A program made the position numbers and the translations under genes. A stretch of DNA of 64,000 bases from the NCBI GenBank assembly GCA_964057225.1, contig OZ059897.1:12834001-12898000 (forward strand), written 5' to 3'. Below the pieces are notes generated by a model. That model ran no database searches, was not told where the DNA came from, and saw only the letters and a list, made by a program, of their open reading frames with translations. Shown here piece by piece: positions 18,648 to 62,292 of the stretch (position 1 is the stretch's first letter; the number at the start of each line of letters is the position of its first letter). Origin of the DNA: Auanema rhodensis. Its lineage: Eukaryota > Animalia > Nematoda.

Positions 18648-19869
18648 ATGAAGGTAGCTCACTTGATAAGAACGGCTTCACGACTTCCTGTTTTTCGTTC
18701 ACAGTGCAATGTCTGCATTTCTTATAGATTTTGTTCATCGAAGTAAGTTCCTTTCATGTATTCTGAATTAAGATTTTTTATGAAGAAACACGCAAACACC
18801 TAAAGATGACTTGGAGAAAGAATTAGATAAAATTAGTCAGAAATTGAAGGAAGATTTTGATGGAACTGTTGGCAAAGACACAGTTGATAAAACCTTCATG
18901 AATTTCAAAAACATGAATGAGGTATATATATCTTAAAAGTATTTGCTGATAGATTTATAGAGACAAGCTTACAAAAGAAGTCACATATTTAATTGGAAAA
19001 TTGCCGTTTCAACATTGGTAATAGGTGGGAGTTGCTTACTAGCATTACTGTATATTAGAAAAATTGTATGTTATAGCGGTAAATTTATTTTGTACTTGTA
19101 AAATATTTTATTTCAGCGTTTGGATGAAAGAGAGAAACAACGTAAATTGACTGCTGGAAAAGCTCGTATTGGTGGCGAATGGGAGCTAATGAACACTAAA
19201 GGTAATGGATAAATTTCTAATGCATTGTTAAAATTAAACCCATTTAAAGGTGAGCTGGAAGGCTCTGAGCAATTGAGAGGCAATTGGGTTCTTATGTATT
19301 TCGGATTTACTCATTGCCCTGACATTTGTCCTGATGAAATAGAAAAAATGATTAAGGTTTTTTGGGACTTATTTAAGAATTCTTAGTTTTGTGCTTAGGT
19401 TGTTAGTCTTCTGAAGGAAGATAAGGATGCTATTCCTGTGGTTCCTGTCTTCATCTCCGTAGATCCTACTCGTGACACTATGAAACGAGTAAAAGAATAT
19501 TGTGCAGAATTTTCTCCTGATCTCCAAGGTTATACAGGAGATGTTGAGCAGGTTAGTTTTCTTATATTTTCAAGGCTAAGGAGTTCTATAATAGGTTAAC
19601 AAAGTTGCTAAAACTTTCCGGGTTTATCACAGTCAAGGACCAAAAACAACTCCTGATGACTACATCGTTGACCACACTGTTATAATGTATTTGATCGATC
19701 CTGATGGCAATTTCCATGATTATTACGGGCAGAATAGGTGATTATTCGCTATGAAAACTTATAATGTTAAAAAAAACGTTTTAGAACCGCTGAGGAGATT
19801 GCCAATGTTGTTAAAATCAAAGTCCTCAAACATCGCCTTCAAGAGAAAAAAGGAATATTTAATTTTTAA
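18648..19869 (+). CDS. sco-1: SCO1/SenC cytochrome c oxidase copper chaperone
   Basis: Basic N-terminal presequence; [11 protein letters not shown]; [14 protein letters not shown] (CxxxC); FISVDP.RD; DYIVDHT; TTTTCAG trans-splice-like site at 18632-18638. Confidence 0.97.
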
Positions 19870-22463: not shown

Positions 22464-23757
22464 ATATATATATATATATATATGTATATAACAAAATAAG
22501 AAACAATTTAACCTTAAAAATATTGCTTAAAATTTGAGAGCAGTGTTTGCTAATCACTCAGCTGGCAAGAAAAGAATTGACAACTCGTGTCTCTCAATTG
22601 TGTGTTAAAGATATGAGAAGTGCAGATCACTTCTGGAAATTTTTTAAAGATTACAACGATAAAAAAAAAGCACATGACAATATTGTTGCAAATCATTTGC
22701 AACCTTGTTGTTGACAAAAAAAAAGAAAAAGCAACCATAACAACTACTCTGTTTTTGTTTTCTTTTTCCTACGCTAGGCTTTCCCAAATTCCATTTTTTT
22801 GTTAAAAATATCGCAACTAACATTTATAAGATAAAAAATTGAAATTATTCTACAACATTGCTTGTTTTATTCGTAAAAACTATGTCTGATATGATTGTTC
22901 AGATTATTGATTTTTTCCCCTTCTAATCAGAAGCTTTATTTCAGTCGTGATGCTGTTCCTTTGGAAGAGAAAATTGAAAAGGAATTGGTTGGTGTTGGGG
23001 ATGAATCAGGTTTGAAAAAAATGATTGGTTCGGATGATGAAACTGATAGTGAGGATGAAGATTTTAGTTAGTTACTATACTCTATATGAAACTTTACAAT
23101 TTATTTAGCTAAGAAACTGTTGAATCGTCAGGAAGAGAAGAAAAAGAGTGTTTTAGATATTGAGGAGAGAGGTTTTTCATTCAATTTCTTTTACATTTTC
23201 ATAGAGTTCGATGTTTTCCAGATTCTTCAGGAAGTGACTCTGACGCTGATCCGGATAAAGAGAAAATTGACCACGTTGTTTTCATTCCAGTATGTTTGTG
23301 CTCGTATAGTGTTTTTTTGCATTTTTAACATTTAGTCTGATGAGCCTATGGAAGAGGGTACTTCGTCAACTTCTAAAAAACGTCCTGCTGCTCCCGAAAC
23401 AGGAGGGGAAGCTAAGAAAGTGAAGACAGAATCTAAGTAGTCTTGAAATCATTAGGCGATTTTTAATATTTCTTTTCAGTGTACCTGATGGTTTGAATGA
23501 GGAAACTGTTCGTAAGTACCTCCGTAGAAAGCCTCATACAACTAAGGAATTACTCACCAAAGTAAAAGCTAAATGTGGAGATATGTCTAAGTCAGAAATC
23601 GTCACGAAGCTGGCGGCTATTTTGAGGGTCTGCACTAATCATCTTTTACGTTTTAATATGTTTTTTGTATTTTAAGGCTATTGAACCACATCAATTCAAA
23701 CAAAAACAAGGTAAAAAGGATGTTCTTTTCTTCTCGTTGACAAACAACATGGCTTAA
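20093..23757 (+). CDS. gtf-2F1: General transcription factor IIF alpha subunit (RAP74)
   Basis: EYGEGSEYGKAAREEARRKKYGRQ; HKTLDIDQAEE; YESSDGEDEGREYDYMSDSGS; C-terminal winged helix EETVRKYLRRKPHTTKELL. Confidence 0.95.
21390..22293 (-). CDS. Histidine phosphatase / phosphoglycerate-mutase-like protein nested in a gtf-2F1 intron
   Basis: MVTKRVIWFVRHGERIDN..DDPPL; CSPFTRC; IEPGLGE; LIVSHGSPI; lies within intron 21382-22944. Confidence 0.9.
22419..22490. repeat. (TC)n followed by (TA)n microsatellite
   Basis: About 20 TC units, then a TA run. Confidence 0.95.
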
Positions 23758-24052
23758 TTATAATGTAAACGTTATTTTAATTTTCATAGTTACTGTAAAT
23801 GATTTTTTGGTATCTCATGGCATTTTACAAGTATGCTAATAGAAATAAATGGTTATACTCGTGCTGTTTCTTTTTCTGTTTCTTTACTCATGTTCTACGA
23901 AATTTCTATAGTGCAGCAGTGATTTTATGACCTGAATGGGTTTTATGAGGGTTTTGATGTGTACATCAATGCAAAGAATATGACAAAATTCAATCAATGC
24001 TAGAGAAATTGACATTGTTCCTATAAAACATTGGAAGGGCTTGTCGTCAAAT

Positions 24053-24125
24053 ACATCATCTACCTTGCAGCCGAACGTGTATGCACTACATGAGACACAG
24101 CTCGGAACTACAGGGTAAACGATAC
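24053..24125 (-). ncRNA. mir-57: mir-57 (miR-10 family) precursor hairpin
   Basis: 5p arm UACCCUGUAGUUCCGAGCUGUGU (24095-24117) closely matches C. elegans miR-57 UACCCUGUAGAUCGAGCUGUGUGU; pairs with the 3p arm at 24061-24080 plus a basal stem. Confidence 0.92.
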
Positions 24126-24515
24126 CTGACTTTATAAAGAATTTTTCAAGGTGGAATGGGAGATGAAATCTTCAATTTTGCTAAAACTAACAGATTCTCA
24201 CGATTCCTGATGAATAATCGCTTTGTTATGCACTGTAGATGAGTTGCAATCGAAACAAAGAAAGGGTGAATTGAAAAAAATAAAACGATTGGACGTATAC
24301 CAAAGCATCAAAAAGGGAATAAAAAACAGACAAAGAAAAATTATACAATATACAGTTATAGAAAGACTGAAGCAGCACCTAACATATGGATACCTAAGTA
24401 TTTTACTGTTTGGGGGACATTTTCTTTTTTCTATAGTATTGTCTGGATACAAGTATTGTTGAGTATTGATAAATTGATGTAAAATGAAAAAGAACATCGA
24501 TGAAGATTCTTCAAA

Positions 24516-24629
24516 TTACATTGTTGTATACTGGAGATAGCTGGAGAAAGGATGGGTCGGGGCCGGGCTACTAGCCGGGAGGATCCTATTCAAATACGCC
24601 GCTCCAATGCCGTAAAATTTATGGGCCAT
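24516..24629 (-). CDS. Candidate 37-aa micro-ORF upstream of mir-57
   Basis: ATG..TAA gives MAHKFYGIGAAYLNRILPASSPAPTHPFSSYLQYTTM, in a GC-rich island after a TAG acceptor at 24680. Confidence 0.3.
   Translation of the reverse strand: MAHKFYGIGAAYLNRILPASSPAPTHPFSSYLQYTTM
24608..24627. promoter_or_regulatory. Back-to-back posterior Hox/Cdx-type sites (CCATAAA / TTTTACG)
   Basis: GCCGTAAAATTTATGGGCC on the + strand; C. elegans mir-57 is known to be activated by the Abd-B protein NOB-1. Confidence 0.45.
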
Positions 24630-27600
24630 CGCAGGATGGAGGCGGTCGGCGATGGAACAACGATGAACGGACGATGGGCCTAATCAGATAGAAACAGTGA
24701 AGGCTGATGTTACTGATCAGACAAAAGTAGATGAAACGTGATTTTCGGTACATAATTGAAAACAAAAATTAATTTCAGTGTATGTCAGAGAATGGATAAA
24801 ACTGAGAAAGCGGAAAACGAAAGAACTAAATAGAAAGTGGATGGAATGAGGCAAGTGGATTATTCGTTTACTTTTATCTCACGTGGAAAGGATTAATTGA
24901 AGCTAAAAGGTGAAATTATGGGATCGCATAATCGAAATTGGAAACCTGATGGATGAGGGAGAAAAGAGGGATAGAAAGAATTAGAGCCACAGATAGAACT
25001 GAATACCAAAGCCTGTAATGGCTGTCTTTGGATTGTCGAACTATTTTGGGATACTAGCGCCGCCCTCAGTAGTTGCCACGCCCCCTCCCCCTTTTCCCCC
25101 CTTTGAACATCACTGTGATTTGATGATATTTTGTGTTCAAAGTGATAATAAAGGTAAGATAAATGCTATGAAATACATTAAACGTCAACAAAGGTATATG
25201 ATTTATTGAATATTGTTAAAATATTTAAAGAATAATACTAAGAATGAAAGATAGGATAAAATATGAAACATGGTATGATATTCAATTCAACAATAGAAAT
25301 ATATATTAAAATGAAGGGAAATCTATTGAATTTCTGGAATGTTTTTGAGAAAGAAGAAATCACATAGATTTAATTAGAACTTTGAAAAGTTAATAGAAAG
25401 GATCGGATTTCCAATTTCTTTTTACTACACAAGTTTTCACATGTGGGGATGGAAATAATCGTTCCACACGATCATAAGTCAAATGATCGGCATCTCTTTG
25501 TGTTTTCAATGATGGAAATAAGTCACATCCAGGACTATTTTAGGTGGAAACCGTAAAAACTAAGCGGGTGGTCGACAAAAAAATAGAATCGCCATTTGAT
25601 GAGGTATCATCTGTTGAGGTATACAATAGCTATGAAAAGAATTTCAGCAGTCAAAATTGAGTTTGATGAGAATAGAAAGATTTGAGTAGAGATATGCCTT
25701 TTTCTCAACATTTTTTGAAAATATGGCGCTATATAACAAAACAATTTCAAAAAGCGAAGAAAAACCGATGTGAATTCAAAAATCAAAAATAAAATGAAGA
25801 ACATTATTGAAGTAACAACGACAATGGAATGCAGTTCCTAAGAATACACGTAAAGCACTTCAAGAATCCAATGAAGTCAGTTCAACTAATTCAAAAATAT
25901 ATAGTTAGTTATCTAGTTATTATTAAGTCATCACTAAAATATAAGGAAAATAGACTATTCTAATAAAAGTTTAACAAACTTTTCTTAAAGTCATATGTTT
26001 TCATTCACACAGCTGGCACATAAAGTTTAAGCATGATATATGCTTGATGTTTATATGAATCGAGGATAGAATTTGAAAACTTTTACTGGAACAAGTTTTA
26101 TGCCAATGAGCTTCCATGAAGCATAACAGCTTTTGACTATTTGTGAAGGAAAGAAATAAGTAAAGCATGAAAATAGCTGTTTTTTTTTAGTGAAATCGCT
26201 TCTTAACTACCCATTGAGGACTTGTATACGATAATGAAGAAATCAAAAATTTCAAAGCTACTAAAGTTCCAAGAATTGAAAAAATGGTAAAGCTTGTCAT
26301 GAGTCCTTACATGGTACGCATGACGCATATTCTTAAAAGTAAATAAGACTAGACAATTAAAGAGAGATGTAACGTGCTCTGCTCATAAGTACGTTTGATG
26401 TCATGTCATGTCATAGAAGGACAGGGTCATCACTTCCTGTGTATCGTTATCTTATTATCTATACCTATACATATAATCTACGGTTTTTCTTTTAATTCAA
26501 AGGCATCCTCCAATAAAACCATAATTTTATTAATATTTCTGATTGAACGGTAATCCAGCTTAAGATACCATCATCATAAAATGTTTAAACGAGAAGAAAG
26601 TTATTTAAAATATAAAAATATATGTATTTCGCTTGAATATACCAGATGCCCTAACGATTGTAGAATCATAAATAGCCATAAATGAATATTTTAGCTTCTC
26701 AATATCTTTCAATATCTGATGAACAAATAAAAGGTGTTTTTACGGCTATCTTGAAATTCAAATTTGTTAGAATCACCGATAAAGGTTTACAGGCATCTTA
26801 TAAAAGAGGGCCAAAGAGGGCTCGTAATTGGAGAAGGGAAAGGCAAGTAAGGATAATATGGGATCTGAACCATACAACGAAAGATATAGGGAAGACTCTG
26901 TTAGGCAAACAAGGGATTAGCACAAGACTAAGAATAGAGAAAAGGCCAAAACACGATTGTAAAAATAAATAAATAGTTAGAAATATATATGAAATTATTG
27001 ATTGAAATTCTAGTATTGTTGAAGTATTATTGGAATATCCATACGAAATTTTATCTTCTAAAAAGTTCAAATTTTAAATAAAATATACACATATGTGGAG
27101 AAAATTATAATAATATTAATAATATAACAGTTCATTATCTGAGATAGATCTTATCGTGATCATATAAATCAGCATGGATTCATTTATAAAATTATTTAAA
27201 TTATAATATTACCGTAATCTTCTGACGCTTTACTGTCAATTTGTGATTTAAAGGTTTTTTTTCCTCAACGTCTTCAGATCATATACGAAATATAGATAAT
27301 AAAGAAGAGGTAGAAGAGAAGAAGAATAATAATGAGGAGGCTTGAGGATAAGTGGTACGAAGGACAAAGGCTAAAAATAGATAAATGTCTAAGAAACACA
27401 TAAATACAGTTTTATGTGAGGAACTAAAAATACTAGGTGTCAATGCGATTATAGGTCTATATATCTCTTTTAGAATGGGGCCTGGACTATTCTTCTGACC
27501 CTGCTGTTACGTTCAGCAGATTTTATTTGAATAGAAAAGCTGTTTAAAAGGGTTATAAGTAATTCTCAATAAGGAAGGGATAAAACATGTACATGTACAT

Positions 27601-37019: not shown

Positions 37020-39640
37020 ATGCCGCAAACTCCTCCAGCAGTTTCCGATTGTTGGGTTTGTTTAATGTTAACCATAGCAGAACTTGAAGTTTTTATAGGA
37101 TGATCTTACGTTGGACACGTCTCGAATAGTACCACAATTAGAAGAGGAAGCTACTGAGCTTGTTGAGAAGGAGTTTGAACGGATTCGACAGGAATATGAC
37201 ACTACTATTTTGGGAGAAGCAAGGGTAAATAAAGGAACCTAATCCGGTTTACCGTATTTTTTTCAGAAGTCATTTACTCAACAAATTCAGTCATATTCTG
37301 GACCGCTGAAGGCTTATAAATTGTACAATTCCGCGGAGCCCTCTCCTTTGTATCTCTGTCCTTTTGAAAAGGTTAAACGATTTTCTTCCACTAAAAGTTT
37401 ACCTCGAATGCGGTATTGGGTTCATACCGAGCGGAATTTCGAGGTTCTTCCATGTTTTCTTTTGACTTCAACATATGCTACTTTTTAAGACTGCAGACAG
37501 TGTTCGTTTGTCTCATATACCTCATATAGACGATGAATTAGACGATCGAGAGTTTGTTACTGAACTACGACATTGCTATACTGAAGTAGGCTCTTGGAAA
37601 TTTTGTTTGCATTCTTTTTTATTATTAAGGGTATTCATGGTGCAGATTTTGGCTGTGGTGAATATATAAATGATTACATGATATATAAACTTTTATCGGC
37701 AACAATGAAGGAATGGAAAGAAGGTACATTTATAAATTTATTCGAATATTAAAACATGCTTAAGATAAATCATATATTCACGCGGCAATATTTAAGATGT
37801 TTCCAAATAAGTACTCATTTAAAGAACTAGAGGATAGCATGTAAGTAATGTTTTCTTTTATGTTTTTACTTTTTTTTAGTTTTTTGACTTTGAAGGAAAG
37901 GTTCGACCCTTCCGGAAGCATTCCAATCGCTCTTAATAAAGTTGATAATAACGTTCAATGTGTCAACCATATGTTGTGCCTCGTGTGTTTGGAATATGAT
38001 TGTACACAGCATTCGGCTGCTTCTGATCATATTCTTAATCCAGCGAAAAAGTCAAATAATTTTTTTGGGACCATGAAAACCCCTTCAACACCTTGTAGCG
38101 AAACCTGCTTTTTAGTTTACAAGGTAATTGTTTTCAGCTTCGACTTTTTTGATTATCATTATTTTAGGACGGAAACGATGTTATTGTTCCCGATAGTGAA
38201 CTTATTATGACAACTCTTAAAGTTTTATTAACTTCTAATGATTATGAAATTTGTAAGATTGCAAAAGTTTTAAATTCAATTTATACCGAGGTTGATGATA
38301 AGCCAAAAGATTGTGTTCAAGTAGGTGGAGTGTTTGAATATTCTTTATTTGATTACCATATTTAGTGGTTTTTATTAGCAAATTCCCTTATTGAGGGGGG
38401 TAACATAGAAAAAGCATCTGAAGGAAAACGTAAAAAACAAATGAAAAAACTGTAAGTTTAAATGAATGTTTGAAATGTAAGTTGTGTCTTATTTTTAGTA
38501 GCCAACGGGAGAAGTATCGTGTCTTTAAGCGTTATCGTTCATCTGTGAGTTTTCTTGCTTATTTTAGAATCATTGTAATTATTTAGTTGGATAATAGTTG
38601 TAAGATGAGGAGATGTAAACATGAAGGGCCTTGTCATCAGAGTGATGATTGCCCTTGTATGAATCTTGACTTAACATGTACAAAATATTGCGGGTAGACA
38701 TTTTATTGCTAGTTTCTTACTTTTATATGATTTTATAGTTGTGATGATAGCTGTGTTATTAAGTTCCCAGGTTGCTCATGTAGTGCCGGATTATGCGCAA
38801 CACAGCAATGTCCTTGTTTCCTGGGACGATGGGAATGTGATCCCGACCTTTGTCAGTCGTGTAATTGTGATATTGAGAATATCAAAAAAGATGGTGGTAT
38901 GAAGTTATTGCACTCTGTCTTTCTCATCTGTACTTTCAGCAGGGGTGATCTTACCATTCTGTCGAAACGTAGGGCTGCAGCTGGGACTGAAAAAAAATAT
39001 AGATGTATGTTAAGTATATAAGTTAATTGTAAATTCGTGCATCTTTATCTTCAGATAGGATTGTCAAATGTGGCAGGATGGGGTTGTTTTATTAAAGGAA
39101 CAGCTGAAAAGGTATATTTTCAAATCTTCTATGATAATATTTTACTTAATATAGGGGGATTTGATATCGGAATATACTGGTGAAATTATCAGTAGTGATG
39201 AAGCCGAACGTCGCGGGCGAATTTATGATAAAAAACAATGTAGTTATGTATTTAGTAAGCTGTCATGTAATATATATATAAATATATTATGACGTTCTTG
39301 CAGGACTTAATAAGGAGCAATCTGTAGATGCTGGCAGAGTGGGTAACATCATTCGTTTTGCTAATCATTCTGACACCAATCCCAACTGTGAATCTCAAGT
39401 AAGTGGACAAACACATGGTTTCGAACTAATAACTTGTATTAAGATTATGATTGTAAACGGAGATCAGAGAATTGGAATTTATGCCAAAAGACATATCGAT
39501 GATGGTGAAGAGTTGTTTTTCAATTACGGATATCAAGGAAAAAATAAGCAATACGTCTCACTAAAACTGAGCGGGTGAGTTGAAACATAACTTATCTTAC
39601 GAATATTGCAATTTCAGTTCTGCAAAAAACAAAAAATAAC
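37020..39640 (+). CDS. mes-2: Enhancer of zeste / EZH H3K27 methyltransferase
   Basis: LSHIPHI; CXC domain ([19 protein letters not shown]); SET domain [41 protein letters not shown]. Confidence 0.93.
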
Positions 39641-41236: not shown

Positions 41237-41832
41237 CTATTCGTAGTCCCTGCCTGAATCTGAACGTCCGAATCGAATGAAGCTTGGCTGCGCACGACCA
41301 AATCGGATGAATGACGGACCCCCACGCTTTCCAAAACGAATAAACGTCGGTTTGCCATTAGAAGCAGATCTGAAGAAATGGGAATTCATTAAATCTTATT
41401 AGGTTTTTGATTCATTATTTTATTTATTTATTTATTTATTTACCTTAGATGACGGAATAGTCCAGCTTCTTCTTCGGGTTCTTCAGGGAAAACCTGAGAC
41501 ATTGCTTCGTACATTTCACGTTGTTTCTAAAGTAGTTAGAGTATATATAGATTGTGTTTTTATAAAAAATATTTTGAGAGTTTATAGAGTGAAGGTTTTA
41601 AAAAGTTTTTTTGCTAATCAAAATAAGAGTGATCCAAAACAGAAGATTTGTTGAAATACGCTCGATGTTCTATCAAATTACAAAGAAATATGGAATTTCA
41701 CATATGCCGGCTTAATCCCGATCTTAAAAAAGAGAAAATTGAGCAAACCTGTAAAGTTTTTGCTTCGCCAGCGGGGGCAGCAGCAACCAAAGCCAAAAGG
41801 CAAAGGGAAAATATGAAAATAGTACGAATCAT
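41237..41832 (-). CDS. flp-4: FMRFamide-like neuropeptide precursor FLP-4
   Basis: Signal peptide MIRTIFIFSLCLLALVAA; last exon SASNGKPTFIRFGKR GGPSFIRFGR AQPSFIRFGR. Confidence 0.92.
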
Positions 41833-48176: not shown

Positions 48177-54155
<5,979 letters not shown>

Positions 54156-61006: not shown

Positions 61007-62292
61007 ATCATGTTTAAAAGTATTTTCTGAAGTCTCCGAAAATTTTATAAACTGCTTGAAGTCTTCTTTCATGAATTTCATGAGTTTCATCAAAACTTCA
61101 GATATAATCTCTTGATACAGTGTTTGGAGTACACTAAACATCTATTTTTCTTTTTAATGAAGGAATTTGGTTATACGTTAATCAAGTTCTCTTCATAGAT
61201 ATTCAGTAAGATTCAGATGCTGAAGCTTACTTGTTTGAAGCTGATTAGGAAAAAACTTAGTTATTGCTCGAGCTTTGTGCTTAGATTCATTTTAAAATGT
61301 TTGTAATACATTAATATGTTGTTAATATTTAAATTTTGTTGCATCAAAAATGGTTATTCAAAATAGCCAAAAAAACACTATGGCGCTGGTATTGTTTCGC
61401 CCACCCCCCCCCTAATAATCAGAGAGTTAACATTAGAGCGCGCTTATAACATTTTGGGCACACACCAGCTTTGCATAAACTAGCGGGAGTGCTCTATCCC
61501 AGATCCGGGGGGTCTGGGGGGGGTATCCCCCCCCAGATAGAGAGAGCTTCAACAAAATTTAAAAGTATTAAAAGTATCAGAGAGAGCACTCCCACTCGCA
61601 GAAACGATACCAGCCCAACACTATATTTCCATAAATTGAGGAATTTTATTTAAATCAGTTTTTATTTAATTTAAATATATTTTAATTGAATATATACTAT
61701 ATGATCTAGCAAAACTTATGAAATTGAAAAAAATTTTTTTTTGTAGTTTGGAGGTGTTTTCTGGAGAATCTAACATAGGGGTGTGCAACCTTCATCGCAC
61801 AGGTACATGTATGATGAAAATTGAAAGCTAGTTTGAAATTCTTAAATCATCTCAAACAAACTTACAAAGATCCAAAACAAAAAAAGCATTTTGAGTTGAA
61901 AAAACTGTGTTGAATTGAGAAAATGTTTTTTTTTAATTAATCATGTTTAAAAGTATTTTGCCCGAAATCATCAGTAACTTCTTAAAGTTCATGATAGCCC
62001 AAGACTTCAGGCCATATAATTCTCCCAGTTTGTATGGAATACACGAAGTTTTTCATTTTTAAACAGAAAATTTTGGTTACAAGTTTACAAAGCTCTCTTC
62101 ATAGATATTCAAAGGAATTCAGATATGGAAACTGATTTGCCTGCTTAAAACATTCAAGCTATGCTCTAGGAGAAACGTAGCTGTTAATCTAGCTGTGTGC
62201 TTAGTATCGTTATTTTGCTAATGAATGAACTTGGCTCTCGTCTTAAACTTTGTTACAGCAAACATGGTTATTCAAAATAGTCAAAAAACATT
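61007..62292 (+). repeat. Two diverged ~360-nt direct repeat copies (61007-61380 and 61939-62292)
   Basis: Shared blocks ATCATGTTTAAAAGTATTTT, CTCTTCATAGATATTCA, TGTGCTTAG and ATGGTTATTCAAAATAG. Confidence 0.75.
61382..61616. mobile_element. MITE with 8-bp target-site duplication (Merlin-like)
   Basis: TSD AACACTAT at 61374-61381 and 61617-61624; imperfect TIRs GGCGCTGGTATTGTTTC / GAAACGATACCAGCCC; internal GC palindromes. Confidence 0.75.

Follow-up and report, generated by a model that had tools for sequence, protein, structure and literature searches.

What does the DNA directly upstream of the microRNA (miRNA) gene mir-57 do in the nematode Auanema rhodensis? Within the 64,000-nucleotide (nt) stretch of contig OZ059897.1 that was analysed (hereafter the window), positions 24516-25100 are the DNA 390 to 970 nt upstream of mir-57. 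An earlier note, made from the letters alone, had read them as a possible dual-function locus, a Hox-driven enhancer that would also encode a peptide within a spliced leader of the primary miRNA transcript (pri-miRNA). Our analyses suggest a plainer answer: the stretch is probably the non-coding 5' flank of mir-57, with its promoter and an enhancer and possibly a pri-miRNA leader. The open reading frame (ORF) of 37 amino acids (aa) that it contains is most likely a chance open frame. The features on which the argument turns are as follows, with GC denoting guanine plus cytosine.

24048-24128, minus strand: precursor hairpin of mir-57 (miR-10 family), a covariance match to Rfam RF04194
24516-24680, minus strand: GC island, C-rich on this strand; proposed non-coding cis-regulatory block
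24610-24624, both strands: near-palindromic posterior-Hox/Cdx-type pair, CCATAAATTTTACGG on the minus strand (24624-24610) and CCGTAAAATTTATGG on the plus strand
24627-24680, minus strand: CATCG cluster, three direct copies and one inverted
24681-25039, minus strand: pyrimidine-rich (65% C+T), AT-rich spacer between two GC blocks; holds the intron proposed earlier
25040-25100, minus strand: G-rich tract (44% G) with two Sp/KLF-type GC boxes; candidate core-promoter element
24516-24629, minus strand: ATG-initiated ORF of 37 aa, encoding MAHKFYGIGAAYLNRILPASSPAPTHPFSSYLQYTTM, judged a chance ORF; its stop-to-stop frame is 24519-24683 (55 codons)
24600-24680, plus strand: 81-nt hairpin antisense to the mir-57 leader

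The mir-57 gene and its GC-rich flank

The miRNA gene on which the question depends is well defined. Its hairpin scores 48.3 bits against the RF04194 model, above the gathering score of 44, and covers that model in full (1-84); mir-57 is the sole Rfam family to pass its gathering score anywhere in the 64-kb window. The predicted fold reaches -37.9 kcal/mol (z = -5.16 against shuffled sequences), and the mature 5p arm, which starts at 24117 and opens with UACCCUGUAG, equals the RF04194 consensus over its first 10 nt and diverges beyond position 10. The same hairpin matches the Rfam mir-10 model weakly, at 25.6 bits and under the mir-10 cut-off. A search of the 181-Mb genome found mir-57 in single copy. 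The locus is a genuine nematode mir-57 (miR-10 family) gene, and the earlier placement of the stretch upstream of mir-57 on the same strand was correct. The RNA runs discussed below are stored as contigs built from 31-letter words, in which mature RNAs of ~22 nt cannot appear. When metagenomes were scanned with the mature sequence, three chance matches were returned, on prokaryote-like contigs and none with an Rfam mir-57; these were discarded.

No further gene lies between the hairpin and the GC island, whose bounds are 390-550 nt upstream of the hairpin on the same strand. Around mir-57 there is no host gene, and the miRNA appears to be an independent unit with 24516-25100 as its 5' flank.

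The island has a GC content of 54.5%, compared with 31.1% over the window as a whole, and ranks as the most GC-rich of all 165-nt stretches there, which bears out its earlier description as a block far above background. Its CpG count (13) is the joint-highest in the window, and the minus strand is ~60% pyrimidine. A level of at least 50% GC is reached at one other place only, 61358-61623. That second place holds a G/C-homopolymer palindrome (CCAGATCCGGGGGGTCTGGGGGGGGTATCCCCCCCCAGATAG) amid AT-rich DNA and has the look of a small inverted-repeat element, with no relation to the mir-57 island.

The island occurs once in the 181-Mb genome, both by DNA search and by a six-frame search with its two open frames (one per strand), which found no paralogue; it therefore belongs to no repeat family. 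It matched no Rfam family even with E-values up to 10, a tRNA search of it found none, and five reading-frame pieces taken from it matched no Pfam domain.

Candidate regulatory motifs

What distinguishes this flank is a set of short motifs, whose patterns (Hox pair, CATCG and GC box) were all defined after inspection of the sequence, so that the statistics given here are indicative only. The GC island contains matches to posterior Hox/Cdx consensus sequences, TTTATGG and, on the opposite strand, TTTTACGG, arranged as an inverted, tail-to-tail pair ~490 nt upstream of mature mir-57. In TRANSFAC the Abd-B consensus has TTTATGG as its core (PMC551538), and TTTATGG is also the top motif recovered by chromatin immunoprecipitation of Hoxd11, for which TTTACGA, with a TTTACG core, is the array-derived motif (PMC5805373). 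The paired Abd-B/Cdx-type sites of the earlier note are thus present, at 24624-24610, and fit published posterior-Hox motifs. An inverted TTTAYGG pair within 12 bp, a pattern drawn up post hoc, is found once in the window against 0.025 expected under a first-order Markov model, and the complete 15-mer CCATAAATTTTACGG has one occurrence in the 181-Mb genome.

Beside the pair, the direct copies of CATCG start at 24676, 24665 and 24654, an exact 11-nt spacing, and the inverted copy (CGATG, ending at 24631) belongs to the inverted repeat CCATCGC/GCGATGG. Four copies in ~50 nt compare with a window rate of 1.06 per kb, again for a pattern chosen post hoc. At the far end of the flank, the GC box of the earlier note, GGGGGCGTGGC at 25085-25075 on the minus strand, is where it was said to be, and a second, GGGCGG, lies at 25065-25060 on the same strand, the two falling within 25 nt. 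GGGCGG and GGGCGTGG each have two copies in the whole window, one of each in 25040-25100.

Taken together, these features suggest a simple arrangement. The G-rich tract with its two GC boxes would itself serve as the core promoter for the primary transcript, or be close to it, and the GC island would act as a promoter-proximal, enhancer-like module, whose putative binding sites are the CCATAAATTTTACGG Hox/Cdx pair and the CATCG motifs, spaced by one turn of the helix. Were transcription to begin near 25040-25100, the unprocessed pri-mir-57 leader would include the island as well, and it is plausible that 24516-25100 is transcribed in that form. Support for this arrangement comes from the closeness of rare motifs to one another, from their position upstream of a single-copy mir-57 and from the precedent in C. 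elegans described below. The narrower proposal, that a posterior Hox or Cdx protein acts directly on mir-57 through the island with no peptide involved, is a possibility that the motif pair raises, and one we hold to be rather doubtful.

The 37-aa frame, the proposed leader and rival readings

Is any of this flank translated? The frame of the 37-aa ORF is open from the proposed splice acceptor through to its stop, and either strand has one frame in which the entire GC island can be read without a stop (55 codons on the minus strand, 59 on the plus strand). The strand opposite the 37-aa ORF holds a longer ATG ORF, of 43 aa. In dinucleotide-preserving shuffles of the 168-nt block, an ATG-to-stop ORF of at least 37 aa arose in 14.6% of cases and at least one fully open frame in 53%, so that the length of the ORF is no more than expected by chance. 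Shuffling was kept to this block since a 99-aa ORF in the same frame beyond the stop inflates shuffled lengths. That ATG ORF (24198-24497, minus strand), rich in F, L and I, is located between the hairpin and the GC island. Pfam recognises no domain in it, and the T-rich, pyrimidine composition of its strand accounts for it best. In the island, stop codons are scarce because the block is 60% pyrimidine and 54% GC on the minus strand, which makes the 37-aa ORF a compositional by-product.

Codon usage points the same way. Against a reference of 1,368 codons from window exons backed by protein similarity in frame or by RNA contigs, the GC content of the ORF at codon positions 1, 2 and 3 is 0.43/0.51/0.60 (third position, or GC3, 0.595), versus 0.51/0.40/0.30 (GC3 0.295) in the exons. 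The per-codon log-likelihood of the ORF, -4.52, lies among the values of exons read out of frame (-4.2 to -5.1) rather than in frame (-3.6 to -4.06), and is not above that of the remaining frames of the block. Start contexts in nematodes are usually A-rich; that of the ORF (CCTGCGATGG) is not.

Searches for relatives were likewise negative. Exhaustive HMMER comparison of the 55-codon frame with 1.84 billion representative proteins, among which short ORFs of related nematodes may lack entries, gave no credible relative. Two matches, a tandem-repeat translation and a TPR protein, were set aside as artefacts, their scores being sums of 5-7 weak, repeated stretches. An exact look-up of the 37-aa peptide found no record, and a word-based protein search with the plus-strand open frame found nothing.

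Evidence from RNA was sought in contigs of three same-species runs. In this region they cover one gene only, that encoding TFIIF-alpha.

22945-23850, plus strand: last six (C-terminal) exons of TFIIF-alpha, convergent on mir-57, seen as spliced RNA contigs in three runs

These contigs match the window without any differing letter, at a depth of 38-138, and pass over five introns of 42-50 nt, all of them GT..AG. The five TFIIF-alpha introns account for all splice joints in 22500-26500, and the leader has no coverage at all, with the proviso that such contigs show presence, not absence. A search for sequencing runs with the stretch itself as query listed none. The splice sites that the earlier note had proposed do exist as dinucleotides on the minus strand, a donor GT at 24945-24944 (CAG/GTTTCC) and an acceptor AG at 24681-24680 (GATTAG/GCCC), yet no RNA contig or joint uses them, they are no more than chance would give, and the five acceptors that RNA confirms in the adjoining gene are more T-rich than this one; the spliced leader finds no support.

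The idea that the mir-57 leader is spliced (24945/24680) and its translation yields a miRNA-encoded peptide of 37 aa, with Hox sites in its first codons, has in its favour that the ORF, its ATG and the GT and AG all exist, that the frame is open from acceptor to stop, and that plants are known to possess miRNA-encoded peptides as a class. The shuffles and the codon statistics went against it, as did the longer ORF opposite, and the protein and Pfam searches and the RNA contigs lent it no support; we consider such a peptide very improbable. Our literature search returned plant and general small-peptide work only, and nothing on a nematode miRNA-encoded peptide. Even less credit is due to the view that the island is an exon from some unannotated protein-coding gene, whichever the strand: the two fully open frames would allow one, but at 54.5% GC the island lies well above the 36-46% of supported exons, its pattern across codon positions is reversed, neither frame has a homologue, Pfam match or paralogue, and no RNA contig covers it while the neighbouring gene is sampled deeply. 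An equally slight chance attaches to the full dual-function proposal, in which the island would serve both as posterior-Hox/Cdx input to a miR-10-family gene outside the Hox cluster and as pri-miRNA template for the peptide. Of the parts of the earlier reading, the upstream position, GC island and Hox-type sites stood; the peptide, spliced leader and stem-loops found no support. Those stem-loops are present as sequences, CCATCGC (24655-24649) with GCGATGG (24632-24626), and CCGGCTAGTAGCCCGG at 24578-24563 on the minus strand, but on the strand of the miRNA folding is no better than chance (z = -0.41 for 24500-24700 and z = -1.45 for 24600-24680). GC-rich islands in AT-rich genomes are often RNA genes, and the plus strand of 24600-24680 does fold well (-30.5 kcal/mol, z = -3.03, a fold equalled by no shuffle out of 200). 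A separate small structured RNA there, antisense to the leader, is nonetheless improbable, if less so than the peptide: this hairpin was picked post hoc as the best after mir-57 among ~300 overlapping windows, has many internal loops atypical of a miRNA precursor, and is joined by no Rfam, tRNA or RNA-contig signal on either strand.

A more serious rival holds that the island is neutral, a decayed insertion or local oddity of composition in which the motifs are coincidental. This we regard as unlikely, though it deserves far more weight than any of the readings just discussed. In its favour, the motif statistics were worked out only once the motifs were already in view, which tempers the promoter and enhancer reading too. 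The other GC-rich spot in the window resembles a repeat-type palindrome, and GC richness in this window does not by itself imply a regulatory function. Two further cautions bear on the promoter and enhancer reading. No RNA contig from the three runs lies at 23974-26500 on either strand, a result with which a short-lived pri-miRNA is still compatible. In C. elegans the mir-57 promoter depends on a LAG-1 site that lies 55 bp upstream of where the mature miRNA begins (PMC2932687). Near the A. rhodensis hairpin the canonical site (GTGGGAA) is absent, and a near-match only to the LAG-1/CSL site, CTCCCATTCCACC, lies at 24150-24165 on the minus strand, between 34 and 48 nt upstream of the first base of mature mir-57; the two species may therefore not share one promoter logic. 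Relatives supply the last point, in favour of neutrality. Searches of Logan contigs found relatives at 51-67% identity with the SCO1 exon and ~80% with exon 5 of TFIIF-alpha, on contigs too short to span the locus with the exception of one, L016 (687-5547). This contig keeps the SCO1-TFIIF-alpha order and reaches 2 kb beyond the TFIIF-alpha stop, and in those 2 kb it has neither mir-57 nor any similarity to the GC island; either the miRNA is elsewhere in this relative or the spacer is longer. Against neutrality stand the uniqueness of the island in 181 Mb, the several independent rare motifs within 600 nt of a Hox-linked miRNA, and the lack of any remnant protein or RNA-family signal in the searches above. 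On balance, a non-coding promoter and enhancer flank remains the reading that we would expect to hold.

Gene neighbourhood and relation to known systems

On its 3' side the locus is bounded by TFIIF-alpha, whose RNA contigs stop at 23836-23850, ~200 nt from the mir-57 hairpin; as they end there on the plus strand, the two genes converge. Exon 5, searched alone, finds PF05793 proteins at ~80% identity, and a loose 30-nt contig end ahead of 22945 suggests that this gene has another exon upstream. Upstream of TFIIF-alpha lies a SCO1-like exon (19399-19596, plus strand). Elsewhere the window includes exons of an E(z)/MES-2-like gene at 38731-39575 (plus strand), which include a SET-like exon and a CXC region rich in Cys; a multi-exon ABC transporter of P-glycoprotein type at 48180-52576 (minus strand; PF00005, E = 5e-34); and a GILT-like exon. 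An flp-type exon at 41240-41395 (minus strand) encodes PTFIRFGKR, GPSFIRFGR and AQPSFIRFGR and has a CpG count among the three highest in the window; we take this FMRFamide-like peptide exon to resemble flp-4. No homeobox gene was seen among the window reading frames inspected, although no search was aimed at homeobox genes. Any Hox input to mir-57 would act in trans, through sites like that at 24610-24624.

The nearest known system is the mir-57 promoter region of C. elegans. There, 2.26 kb of upstream DNA is a functional promoter with posterior expression, contains blocks conserved in C. briggsae and, in multiple copies, causes tail defects, apparently by titrating a factor; the posterior Hox gene nob-1 is required for normal mir-57 expression, and miR-10 is the mammalian counterpart of the miRNA (Zhao et al., 2010; PMC2932687). 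In both species the DNA in question precedes the orthologous miRNA and shares its strand; the C. elegans region depends on nob-1, and the A. rhodensis flank carries posterior-Hox-type sites. A regulatory role for 24516-25100 would be consistent with this precedent. The two differ in that the LAG-1 site at 55 bp has no canonical counterpart here, and in that no direct Hox site is reported in the portion of the C. elegans account used, as against a candidate pair in A. rhodensis.

Two further comparisons place the locus. With the miR-10 genes of bilaterian Hox clusters it shares the miRNA family, of which mir-57 is the nematode member, and presumably also a regulatory connection with posterior Hox proteins; it differs in its setting among SCO1, TFIIF-alpha, GILT, E(z)-like SET and flp-type genes. 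The peptides encoded by miRNA transcripts (miPEPs) are established mainly in plants, miPEP165a being an example. The 37-aa ORF resembles theirs in being short, in starting with ATG and in its place upstream of a hairpin, in DNA possibly contained in the primary transcript; it departs from them in its non-coding codon usage. We know of no miRNA-encoded peptide reported from a nematode; one would be the more exciting claim, and it finds no support here.

As it stands, the stretch amounts to an unexceptional upstream region of a miRNA gene, with several candidate motifs, of which the near-palindromic Hox/Cdx-type site is the most notable. To our knowledge, the feedback loop between mir-57 and nob-1 has been described from C. 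elegans alone, and there by genetics alone. Should the Hox/Cdx-type site prove to be conserved and bound, it would provide a concrete cis element for the nob-1 loop in a distant nematode, a useful if incremental addition.

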